This document shows positions 1 through 10,250 of a DNA stretch of 64,000 nucleotides, piece after piece (the first letter of the stretch is position 1; each line of letters begins with the position of its first letter). The stretch lies in the sequence record ON287375.1; one strand, given 5' to 3'. Below the pieces are notes generated by a model. That model searched no databases and was not told the origin of the DNA. It worked only from the letters and a program-made list of their open reading frames with translations. A program made the position numbers and the translations under genes.

Positions 1-447
1 CTTACTTGTAATTCAACAATCCGTTTCGGCTTACCTGACACCTTGGTCAATGTAACGCCCGGTTCGTATCTATTACGTTGGGAAGGACAGTGGGGATAAT
101 TGTTTTTTGTCTGCGATAACTTAGATCCTGCTCAACTGGATCTCTTCTCCCTGAGGCTGAGAGCACTATTTAAGATTAACGCTTAGTATAACGAAGTATA
201 TCTAAAAAGCCGAACTTAATCGGTAGTTGTTGAGTATCGTAGAGGGACTCGTTTCCAAATTGTGGTCCTGCCATTATACTACACTAGTTAGGCTGGAACA
301 TGTAATCGCTAGTGAAGTTCCTATTCGCTGCAACGCGGCCCTAGGAAGGGAATTGGCGAACCGACTGATCCAGGTGAATGACCATGGCGTAATCATTCCT
401 TTTGTTATCAGCCGGCTCTTGTTCTTAACAGAATATAGTAAACTCTG

Positions 448-744
448 TTAATTAAATACTTTTGGTGGGACTATGGTATTTGGTCTTGGTCTGTATTTCA
501 TCATGGTTTTGTTAATTCCTTCTTCCCCATGATTGTTCCAGATCTTGATGATTTCCTTTTCATCTAAATGATTCATCAGGAACTTGACCTTTCTCAATAC
601 CGCATTGGTCCATAGCTTAGACTTGTTCTTAGCAGACCACCATGTTTTAAAGCTCAGCAAACAAACCACCCCATTCCAACCAGTCTTCTGCCAACAGATC
701 AGAGATTGAAGGAACCCAGGTATTGGATATAAGTTTTGCCGCAT
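448..744 (-). CDS. Small hypothetical protein; start uncertain, 5' part overlaps tad2
   Basis: Open frame directly after tad2 and followed by hairpin TTAACAGA/TCTGTTAA (425-452). No clear RBS. Confidence 0.35.
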   Translation of the reverse strand: MRQNLYPIPGFLQSLICWQKTGWNGVVCLLSFKTWWSAKNKSKLWTNAVLRKVKFLMNHLDEKEIIKIWNNHGEEGINKTMMKYRPRPNTIVPPKVFN

Positions 745-892
745 CGATTATTAAGAAGAATGGTTGAATCCCAGGAACATTATGAATAGTTACACATAGA
801 CCTTTACCGTTCCAACCTTTACGCTGGTATCTTTTCCCTTCTTTAAGTCCTTCAAGAACTTCTGAGAAAGTAAGCAACTTAGTTTCTTGCAT
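647..892 (-). CDS. tad2: Tad2/DUF2829-family signalling-molecule sponge (anti-Thoeris/anti-CBASS type)
   Basis: Motifs TFSEVLEGLKEGKRYQRKGWNGKG and WVPSISDLLAEDW match the recalled DUF2829 pattern (F..AL..LK.G....R.GWNGK ... W..S..D.LA.DW). RBS TAAGGAA. Confidence 0.85.
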   Translation of the reverse strand: MQETKLLTFSEVLEGLKEGKRYQRKGWNGKGLCVTIHNVPGIQPFFLIIDAAKLISNTWVPSISDLLAEDWLEWGGLFAEL

Positions 893-1615
893 GACAATTC
901 CTTAGGGAGAAAAAGGCCCCATATCAAACACTAGGATATGGGGCAAAGGGAATCCTCAATGGAACACATTAACCATTGAGGCAAGCAGCAACCAGCTGGC
1001 GGTTACGCTTTTAATATGGACTTGTTAGATCATATTAAAAGTGCCAGAGATTCATTCCTCTGGCTGCTCAATATAAGCTTAAACACATACGCTTGAAGTT
1101 TAGGCAGCTATAACTTCCATATCCATATTTCAGAAAACAAACATATGGAAGTAGGGTCTTTCGACCCTTACCAACCTCACTGAAGACTTCCTTGCCTTCC
1201 CTAGGAATACTATTTCTAATACCCTTAGGGAAAGCAAATGCATACCAGGAAAAGGAGTACGCACTCACCTTCTTACCTATTGTGAAGATATCAAAGCCGC
1301 GGAGCACGATCCCTTCTTTATATCTACTCGTTCTAATTGAATAGGTTATAAAGAAAGGGGGAAGGGCAGACTTCCCACCTTTGGCTAAGGGCATGAACAA
1401 TGGCTACAAAAACCCAGGCGGGGGTAATCGTAGTGAAAGCACGATGGCAGTACGTGATTCTTTAAGAGTACTTATTCCGGTCAAGATCGCTTAAAGAATC
1501 AGAGATATTAATCGTGACATAATATCTCTGGCCTGTGTAAATATTCACAGTTAAATGTGTATGAGCAATGCAACTTGAACGACAAGAAGTGAAGTGGAAG
1601 AAGTTCACTTTTTGT
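893..1615. ncRNA. Non-coding region packed with 12 or more stem-loops; candidate structured RNA or long leader
   Basis: Perfect stems at 916-944, 954-981, 1008-1041, 1043-1064, 1113-1152, 1153-1168, 1456-1500 and 1500-1530. GAAA tetraloops on the minus strand at 1159-1162 and 1213-1216. No credible ORF. Confidence 0.5.
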
Positions 1616-1649
1616 TACATAATATAAATAAGTTCCATTATTAATTAAA

Positions 1650-1670
1650 TAGATATTATCAAAGGGAATA
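1650..1670 (+). promoter_or_regulatory. Putative early (virion RNAP) promoter
   Basis: TAGATATTATC core shared with about 10 intergenic sites; lies upstream of the 1713 gene array. Confidence 0.55.
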
Positions 1671-1712
1671 TACATTGATATTAATTTTCATTAGAGTATA
1701 GAGGAACTTATT

Positions 1713-2327
1713 ATGCACATTCCAGAAATCGAAATTAACCGTATGCGTAAAATCATTAGCAGTTCTTTATCTGAACGTTTTCACGTTAATCAGGTAACTG
1801 TTGAACAAGTAAAACCAGATGCACTTCATGAAGGTCATATCTGGGAGTCTGAAGTTTATGCATTTGAATTCATTATCAATGGTACTGATCGTTATATCAC
1901 TTTCTGTACCTTGCGCCTTGGTCGTACCATGTTCACCAGGGCTAAACAAGGGATCTGTGAATCTCTTGCCAAACTAATCAGACCGCATGATTTTGGTTTG
2001 ATGGCAACCGGGGATTATTTAAATCGTAATGATGTGGTGGGTAAGTTTATTGAATGTCAGATAAACTTGAAAGCTCATCAACATCTGCAAAGCTATTTTG
2101 CAAGCCACACCATGATCACCAATAATGAATATGACGTTGCAATTGGGTATGACATTACTCGCCGTCATAAAACCACCATGACTTTTGACTGTGTTTTTGA
2201 AATCCTAGTCAAAGAGAAAAAGGACATTAATTACACCAAGTATTCTGGGATGATGATTAATGGTTCCCTCACCGCACTGAATGATGCCAATGGTAAGAGT
2301 GTTAATATCAGGGACATCTTCATCTAA
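1713..2327 (+). CDS. Hypothetical protein, 204 aa
   Basis: RBS GAGGAA; first gene after the early promoter. Confidence 0.85.
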   Translation: MHIPEIEINRMRKIISSSLSERFHVNQVTVEQVKPDALHEGHIWESEVYAFEFIINGTDRYITFCTLRLGRTMFTRAKQGICESLAKLIRPHDFGLMATGDYLNRNDVVGKFIECQINLKAHQHLQSYFASHTMITNNEYDVAIGYDITRRHKTTMTFDCVFEILVKEKKDINYTKYSGMMINGSLTALNDANGKSVNIRDIFI

Positions 2328-10173: not shown

Positions 10174-10250
10174 AACCACTGCCCCCAAATGGAGGCAGTG
10201 GTTTTTATGTTGCATATGTTTTTGAATAGATATTATTCAAGTGAATGTAA
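10174..10250 (+). promoter_or_regulatory. Terminator plus early promoter cassette
   Basis: Hairpin AACCACTGCC/GGCAGTGGTT with T-run, then TTTTGAATAGATATTATTCAAGTG. A similar cassette lies at 55802-55893. Confidence 0.65.

Follow-up and report, generated by a model that had tools for sequence, protein, structure and literature searches.

A conserved gap upstream of the Tad2-family gene of Serratia phage vB_SmaM-Yubaba very probably encodes a structured, noncoding RNA built of repeated two-hairpin modules

Few large structured noncoding RNAs, of more than 400 nt, are found in bacteria and phages; with each new class, such as OLE, GOLLD, ROOL and raiA, came new biology. GOLLD and ROOL are typically located near transfer RNA (tRNA) genes. 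Among other phage elements, HK022 put consists of two side-by-side stem-loops just 3' of an early promoter and 5' of terminators, and the classical RNase III sites of phage T7 have internal loops. The RNA biology of jumbo phages is almost unexplored. Here, we describe an unannotated 820-bp gap in the 255.7-kb genome of Serratia phage vB_SmaM-Yubaba (Yubaba), an OBP-like jumbo phage whose record has annotated genes for a multisubunit RNA polymerase. The stretch of DNA that was analyzed, referred to below as the window, is 64,000 nt long and corresponds to positions 186001-250000 of sequence record ON287375.1; the gap occupies window positions 893-1712, between a Tad2-family gene (tad2) and a gene for a protein of 204 aa. 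In all likelihood the gap encodes a discrete, structured, noncoding RNA of approximately 700 nt that is read from the minus strand.

The gap folds far beyond chance on both strands; a comparison with shuffled sequence had been proposed in an earlier note on this DNA that was prepared from the letters alone. The minus strand of 893-1712 has a minimum free energy of -258.2 kcal/mol, compared to -194.6 +/- 8.6 for dinucleotide shuffles (z -7.4), and the plus strand reaches -245.8 kcal/mol (z -6.5). The note had described 893-1615 as a tandem hairpin array, and all 10 of the stems that it named are present where it had placed them:

916-944, 954-981, 1008-1041, 1043-1064, 1192-1237, 1311-1358, 1455-1501, 1500-1530 and 1582-1615: stems with these spans in a search for repeats
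1153-1168: stem seen in the minus-strand fold

Its finer observations also held: the loops of the first two stems contain AACAC on the plus strand, and there are two GAAA tetraloops on the minus strand, one at 1153-1168 and one at the apex of 1191-1232. The extent that it gave was largely right, the real element being slightly wider, from ~1660 (with the promoter block) or ~1610 (the likely 5' end) to ~908 (the U run of the terminator). Likewise, the stems do lie back to back, but they are not independent hairpins; they form five repeats of a module of two hairpins. A stem at 1428-1445, thought to fit the plus strand better, is disrupted in the close relative Klebsiella phage N1M2 in an alignment of six sequences (see below) and lies outside the conserved structure.

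Homologous gaps are present in 14 GenBank phages and, in the same arrangement, in 6 metagenomic contigs (~20). Compared to Yubaba, the gap DNA of phage Sureiya is 98.7% identical, that of N1M2 87.6% and that of Shewanella phage SXP01 69%. For the 204-aa protein alongside, SXP01 reaches an identity of 45%, and therefore the nucleotides of the gap are more conserved than the neighboring protein. With the 204-aa protein as an anchor, noncoding gaps of 600-1000 bp were located at the equivalent position in Kc263, pEt-SU, Survivor, OBP, AH04 and six Aeromonas jumbo phages, and nhmmer connects the enterobacterial, Pseudomonas and Erwinia gaps directly. The hosts range from Aeromonas to Pseudomonas to Serratia, and the family is limited to OBP-like jumbo phages of gamma-proteobacteria. 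A search of IMG/VR with the neighboring protein as single query gave no matches, and two degenerate DNA-pattern scans of IMG/VR returned mainly chance AT-rich matches, with three true relatives left after sieving with nhmmer.

No open reading frame (ORF) is conserved in the gap among these relatives, and no peptide is kept beyond near-identical phages. Protein-coding or decayed coding sequence is a very improbable explanation of the locus. It might take the form of a 110-aa ORF at 1068-1400 on the minus strand, which the earlier note had named as a possible functional product, or of small plus-strand ORFs; the Yubaba gap does contain ORFs of 33-110 aa, and on the plus strand of SXP01 there is a good Shine-Dalgarno sequence with an ATG where Yubaba has position 1393. 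However, the 110-aa ORF is gone in N1M2 at 87% DNA identity, the ATG is lost in the relatives L250 and L252, and the frame in which conserved nucleotides would be read differs between Yubaba and SXP01.

What is kept is pairing. RNAalifold was applied to six graded relatives (Yubaba, N1M2, L250, L252, L254 and SXP01), OBP being left out of the full-length alignment because its extra module was misaligned, and returned 181 pairs, 24 of them changed on both sides. The both-sided changes include helices of modules 1, 2, 3 and 5, the 3' hairpin at 954-981 and the terminator. When the local fold of Yubaba is projected on SXP01, 119 pairs are unchanged, 17 have a compatible change on one side, 15 are changed on both sides and 30 are broken, compared to 87-97 broken pairs in a control with slid partners. 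A covariance model of modules 3-4 (R2) was aligned to all loci, and 48 of its 51 pairs are changed on both sides, including 24/24 in helices 3-4, which make up module 4; 90.1% of its paired cells can pair, compared to 70.0 +/- 0.6% in shuffles (0/500) and 42-52% with slid partners. For the seed of hairpin B, the long hairpin of each module, 14 of 18 pairs are changed on both sides (shuffles 0/500), and these shuffle counts are strong indications and not probabilities, because the seed was chosen for pairing, the R2 alignment is fitted by the model and contains paralogous modules side by side, and the phages share ancestry. Free of any alignment, 76% of 54 B hairpins are preceded, at a distance of 0-1 nt, by an uninterrupted stem of 6 bp or more, compared to 15% with shuffled upstream sequence. 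RNAalifold predicted no structure for module 3 of distant phages when the sequences were aligned by MAFFT without regard to structure. The compensatory changes, which the note had proposed to look for across related phages, exceed the controls and are strong evidence that a base-paired RNA structure has been maintained.

In 17 of 17 phages, the lower free energy belongs to the strand antisense to the 204-aa gene, with a margin of 18-47 kcal/mol; this strand also has the larger number of G.U pairs and the stronger z-score of the two. Read as minus strand, 30 of the Yubaba pairs are broken in SXP01, as against 57 when read as plus strand, and a near-doubling is also seen in N1M2, where the stem of the terminator survives solely through G.U pairs on the minus strand. 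Read from the opposite strand, the conserved U.G pair by the apex of the B hairpins would become an A.C mismatch. It is on the minus strand that U runs come after the terminators. The proposal of a structured minus-strand noncoding RNA oriented like tad2 is strongly backed by conservation, covariation, the asymmetry of G.U pairs, a promoter-like element, a terminator, the lack of a conserved ORF and the lack of an Rfam match.

Read 5' to 3', the RNA is arranged as follows, with all features on the minus strand; the B model is a covariance model of the B hairpin:

1582-1615, minus strand: 5' hairpin H0; relatives have a hairpin of other sequence at the same position
1561-1570, minus strand: conserved unpaired motif CAUUGCUCAU, invariant in the six-sequence alignment
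1456-1530, minus strand: module 1, hairpins A1 (~1501-1530) and B1 (1456-1500), with compensatory changes in both; B-model match at 1457-1499
1393-1455, minus strand: linker with a small hairpin CACG...CGUG (1439-1455), conserved UGCCAUCGUG and GCCAUUGUUCAU (1393-1404), and a CU-rich stretch
1308-1373, minus strand: module 2, hairpins A2 (GC-rich, 1356-1373) and B2 (1308-1355); B-model match at 1313-1356
1295-1308, minus strand: mini-hairpin with conserved loop CCGC (GUGCUCCGCGGCUU), invariant in the six-sequence alignment
1191-1266, minus strand: module 3, hairpins A3 (1233-1266, pyrimidine-rich loop CUCCUUUUCCUGG) and B3 (1191-1232, GAAA apex); helices 1-2 of R2; B-model match at 1196-1233
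1113-1168, minus strand: module 4, hairpins A4 (AGGGUC-GAAA-GACCCU, 1153-1168) and a variant B4 (1113-1152); helices 3-4 of R2
1008-1064, minus strand: module 5, hairpins A5 (1043-1064) and B5 (1008-1041) with 1 nt between them; flagged as terminator-like
954-1006, minus strand: two 3' hairpins, 988-1006 (loop with AGCU) and 954-981
908-944, minus strand: intrinsic terminator, a 10-bp GC-rich stem (916-944) and CUUUUUCU, 24 nt 5' of the tad2 start codon

Within a module, hairpin A is short, variable and in many cases rich in GC, and it adjoins a long hairpin B with 0-1 nt between them. The B hairpins have AU-rich, almost bulge-free stems of 16-19 bp (up to 20 bp), in which the 5' arm is rich in U and the 3' arm in purines; A-U, U.G and U-A pairs close the apex, and the consensus is CUUUCUUAAU-(variable inner stem)-AUU-loop-AGU-(inner stem)-AUUAAGAAAG. 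The modules are spaced irregularly (~95-155 nt), and relatives have between 4 and 6 of them, with six in OBP. The variant B4 carries a conserved motif, AUGUUUGUUUU, and a motif of the GCUCCGC type, as in the mini-hairpin, is also found in pEt-SU, Survivor and the Aeromonas phages. The linker at 1393-1455 contains blocks that are invariant in the six-sequence alignment, and its CU-rich stretch resembles an anti-Shine-Dalgarno sequence in relatives. RNAalifold pairs GCUCAU of the 1561-1570 motif with GUGAGU at ~1263-1268, a pairing that is invariant and hence has no covariation test. In the region of the 3' hairpins, CCUC/GAGG of Yubaba is replaced by the fully compensated GUCC/GGAC in N1M2.

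The ends of the unit are well marked. At 916-944, a GC-rich stem is followed by a U run (CUUUUUCU) on the transcribed strand, as in an intrinsic terminator; the stem is conserved in N1M2, L250 and L252 and shows UA-to-CG covariation. Equivalent terminators are present in L250, L252 and pEt-SU and, by eye, in OBP, Kc263 and Survivor. From promoter core to terminator the distance is ~705 nt in Yubaba, N1M2, L250 and L252 and ~575 nt in pEt-SU, and judged by its last hairpins, the RNA appears to be shorter still in the AH04-like contigs. At the other end lie two promoter-like elements on opposite strands:

1615-1660, minus strand: three-block AT-rich promoter-like element with GATAATATCT (1651-1660), TTATGGAA (~1632-1641) and TATATTATGTAA (1615-1626)
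1651-1666, plus strand: early-type promoter of the divergent plus-strand operon, ahead of the 204-aa gene, matching the N1M2/OBP prediction with 1 mismatch

Across 18 phages the three-block element shows little or no variation. For N1M2 and OBP, the predicted early promoter is RKATATTATYWAAGTG with the core ATATTAT, and the phiKZ early promoter, TATATTAC, also has this core (PMC7058600). We scored clade early promoters as a match to KATATTATYWAAGTG with an upstream TTTCARRY, the N1M2/OBP consensus (PMC7058600). The plus-strand site at 1651-1666 matches; the element on the side of the RNA has only the ATATTAT core in common with these promoters, followed by GTAA, and different flanks. Nine sites in the window match the motif, compared to 0.93 expected; the other eight copies of KATATTATYWAAGTG are at 10228, 25472, 30911, 31670 (minus strand), 35326, 40530, 55866 and 56562, and they help to annotate the early transcription units of Yubaba. 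ATATTATGTNA occurs twice in the 64 kb, at 1615-1625 and 1515-1525, on the same strand and both times inside the RNA locus. The second position falls in hairpin A1 (~1500-1530), which holds a second ATATTATGT; across its 5' arm and loop runs a second copy of the promoter-like core, AGATATTATGT, which may also act as an internal promoter in Yubaba. Compensatory changes maintain the A1 hairpin in distant relatives, where the promoter-like motif decays.

Two tandem ATATTATGT motifs on one strand, at a divergent strand switch with a local change in the sign of GC skew, could also be expected of a replication origin or primer resembling ColE1 RNA II or a T7 primary origin, or of the DNA hairpin or cruciform that had been among the earlier suggestions. 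At an origin, transcription from the promoter into the structured region would prime or activate replication. We regard either role as improbable. Cumulative skew follows gene orientation genome-wide, and the locus is a minor local minimum among several and no global extreme. The strand-specific G.U pairs and the conserved U.G wobble oppose recognition as double-stranded DNA, and a terminator closes the unit.

The structure is confined to this locus. In the window, the B-hairpin model matches only within 1007-1499, and it has no match in the other 191.7 kb of the Yubaba genome; in relatives, its matches are limited to the homologous gap and one B-type hairpin in a second gap just 5' of the tRNAs. 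This sixth B-type long hairpin is found in Yubaba at ON287375.1 185912-185959, just 5' of the tRNA cluster (CUUAAAG...AUUACGAUAAGU...CUUUGAG), and has counterparts in N1M2, SXP01, OBP, Kc263 and L252. That the B hairpin is a general terminator or repeat element of the phage is ruled out by the lack of matches elsewhere in the genome.

Rfam 15, searched at the gathering threshold and including GOLLD, ROOL, OLE, HEARO, raiA, 6S, tmRNA and RNase P, gave no match in the window, answering the question of known families that the note had raised, and a permissive search of 1-1800 gave chance matches only (13-19 bits, E 2.8-10). In 11 relatives Rfam found tRNAs only, and ARAGORN found no tRNA or tmRNA genes in the window. 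There are no tandem repeats in the region, and direct repeats are trivial (7-15 nt). A type III toxin-antitoxin antitoxin array and a CRISPR-like array were considered and rejected on the lack of near-identical direct repeats and the irregular spacing. In 5,426 E. coli genomes, nothing similar to the stretch 1100-1540 (441 nt, modules 1-4) was found, which rules out a copy of an E. coli RNA. Literature searches found no published description of the element. Judged by sequence, it is a new RNA family without a relative in Rfam 15, within the broad category of large structured phage noncoding RNAs near tRNA genes.

How might such an RNA act? Transcription would run from the clade-invariant early-type promoter at ~1615-1660 to the terminator at 908-944, and read-through of the terminator would supply tad2 and the tRNAs. 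Because the five-fold helix, the wobble pair, the loops and the invariant linkers resemble repeated recognition sites, we read the RNA as multivalent: made early, it would serve as a platform that binds several copies of one conserved partner. A host partner should be shared by gamma-proteobacteria from Aeromonas to Pseudomonas to Serratia, and candidates would be an RNase III-type binder of double-stranded RNA, RNase E, Hfq, or the ribosome or Shine-Dalgarno sequences through CU-rich loops; alternatively, it could be a phage protein. The RNA would either titrate this partner, as a sponge, or build a ribonucleoprotein, as a scaffold. We put multivalent binding forward tentatively, as a mechanism that falls somewhat short of probable; for the best combined explanation, in which the identity of the RNA and multivalent binding are taken together, we see the balance as even. 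No targets complementary to the invariant linker motifs were found in the window.

Several points weigh against this interpretation, in addition to the dependence among the alignments given above. Transcription itself, its ends and its timing are deduced from sequence features, and the binding partner is hypothetical. The 204-aa protein has no PDB or PHROG match and therefore provides no clue to an RNA-binding partner. Most directly, the U-rich B 5' arms, each following a GC-rich A hairpin, can also be read as a series of intrinsic terminators, which would favor a cis-acting attenuator.

Such a cis-acting leader or attenuator, which we rate as possible though on the unlikely side, would consist of five weak terminators, each an A hairpin with the U-rich arm of its B hairpin, plus the strong last one, placed between the early promoter and tad2, the tRNAs and terminase. 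It would gate or time read-through, possibly freed by an antitermination factor or because the paired hairpins act on the polymerase in the manner of put. A2 and A5 with their U-rich arms are flagged as terminator-like, as are internal A hairpins in most relatives. The tad2 gene begins 24 nt past the last terminator, and no promoter-like element for it lies in this spacer; the tRNAs are found 3' on the same strand in all cases, in a minus-strand block of ~8.5 kb whose last gene is terminase. As a sole function, however, a barrier to transcription would need none of the conserved inner stems, U.G wobble, loops or linker motifs. By the time the 3' arm of B is synthesized, the polymerase is already beyond the U tract, so that this arm has no influence on that termination, and Aeromonas phages keep the RNA without tad2.

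A processed precursor is quite unlikely. In that case the long B helices, coaxially extended by A, would be cut by RNase III or another endonuclease into approximately five small RNAs or to leave protective 3' hairpins. Five AU-rich, nearly bulge-free helices of 16-20 bp in an early-type transcript would suit this, as would the fact that each segment between hairpins has its own conserved motif. On the other hand, these helices lack internal loops, unlike classical T7 sites, and the conserved wobble and apex suggest that the intact hairpin is recognized.

One form of multivalent binding concerns the ribosome. Unpaired parts of these RNAs are enriched in the anti-Shine-Dalgarno-like CCUCC, with 24 copies on the RNA strand, 3 on its complement and 7.2 expected; for CCUCCU the numbers are 14, 0 and 2.4. 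Examples are the loop of hairpin A3 and the linker ACCUCCUUA in SXP01 and L254; Yubaba itself has CUCCU only. As an unlikely idea, the RNA could represent a new class of large phage noncoding RNA with five stacked "dumbbell" modules and anti-Shine-Dalgarno-like loops that acts on a universal host machine at the start of infection, capturing ribosome-binding sites or a ribosome-associated or RNA-decay factor, or that self-assembles into a higher-order particle like ROOL or GOLLD. If true, it would be an RNA-based device for host takeover or counter-defense, co-expressed with the Tad2 sponge. A decoy for defense proteins, one of the suggestions in the note, is pure conjecture; conservation across hosts with different defense repertoires points, if anything, to a more universal partner.

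The gap is flanked by two genes:

647-892, minus strand: Tad2-family gene, 81 aa, directly 3' of the RNA (phmmer against PDB, and Pfam)
1713-2327, plus strand: gene for the 204-aa protein, first gene of a long plus-strand block or early operon, kept in all relatives

The neighbor had been taken for tad2, and correctly so: in phmmer searches of PDB the 81-aa protein matches ModTad2 (9eib) and Tad2 (8v3e) at E ~5e-11, and its homologues carry Pfam PF11195. One homologue is N1M2_258 of Klebsiella phage N1M2 (L003:5652-5891), 79 aa and 77% identical to the Yubaba protein, whose label "methionine--tRNA ligase" is, on this similarity, almost certainly wrong; OBP_014 is another. The tad2 and tRNA genes lie 3' of the RNA on the same strand in every relative examined that has them, the Aeromonas phages being without tad2. 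The AlphaFold model of the 204-aa protein is confident (predicted local distance difference test, pLDDT, 90.3) and has a helix-plus-sheet unit that occurs twice; it has no structural match in PDB at E <= 0.001 and no PHROG family, and may represent a new fold.

Beyond tad2, a second gene-free gap of ~886 bp extends to tRNA-Asn (window 1-646 and on to ON287375.1 185761). It too is conserved in nucleotides: Pseudomonas phage OBP has 84% identity to window 253-352, the two having GCAGGACCACAAUYUGG (minus strand) in common, and window 1-120 is 88% identical to Kosakonia phage Kc263. The second gap is probably more noncoding RNA of the same transcription unit. The near-identical phage Sureiya has an insertion in it, a 204-bp coding sequence (L002:3106-3309) labeled "helicase superfamily 1/2, ATP-binding protein" that is probably a gene fragment or mobile insertion. 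HNH endonuclease genes are present among the tRNA genes 3' of the RNA in several relatives (L012:1030-1533, L251:327-866 and L252:286-819), which suggests that the tRNA and noncoding RNA region is a hotspot for homing elements.

The RNA combines clean boundaries and strong covariation with restriction to one clade of giant phages that have their own transcription apparatus. It heads a unit with an anti-Thoeris sponge gene and phage tRNAs, and is a tractable candidate for takeover at the level of RNA or for control of gene timing. Annotation of ~20 genomes would be corrected, as the region is now blank or filled with spurious small ORFs.

Several known systems share some of these features. Phage RNA decoys, such as solitary-repeat RNA anti-CRISPRs and pseudo-ToxI arrays, are also phage-encoded repeated RNAs, and the Yubaba RNA adjoins tad2. 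However, it has no direct repeats, its hairpins are kept across hosts with different defense repertoires, and no similarity to a known defense RNA was found. ColE1 RNA II and the T7 primary origin resemble the locus in having an untranslated, structured transcript or phage promoters in tandem where the strand switches, but the skew here is not that of an origin, the unit closes with a terminator, and covariation at the RNA level runs throughout. The T7 early region has several long hairpins in a phage early transcript that are cut by RNase III; in the Yubaba RNA there are no cistrons between the hairpins, the stems are perfect, and cleavage is hypothetical. HK022 put has paired adjacent stem-loops after an early promoter, compared to five copies and a multisubunit phage polymerase in Yubaba, and the likeness lies in the arrangement, a put-like action being hypothetical. 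CsrB and RsmZ are closer in design, with tandem similar hairpins in one untranslated RNA that ends in a terminator, and multivalent binding of the kind proposed here. They differ in that the Yubaba stems, at 16-19 bp, are much longer, the RNA is phage-encoded and its partner is hypothetical; no GGA motif is conserved in the loop columns of the B hairpins, whose loops are variable and closed by AUU...AGU. GOLLD and ROOL, finally, are large (hundreds of nucleotides), phage-encoded and highly structured RNAs with many conserved loops, whose function is unknown, and like them the Yubaba-type RNA keeps company with tRNAs, which are always 3' on the same strand. Their covariance models give no match to it even at E <= 10, and in place of one multi-domain fold, the Yubaba RNA is built of repeated two-hairpin modules, an unusual architecture.

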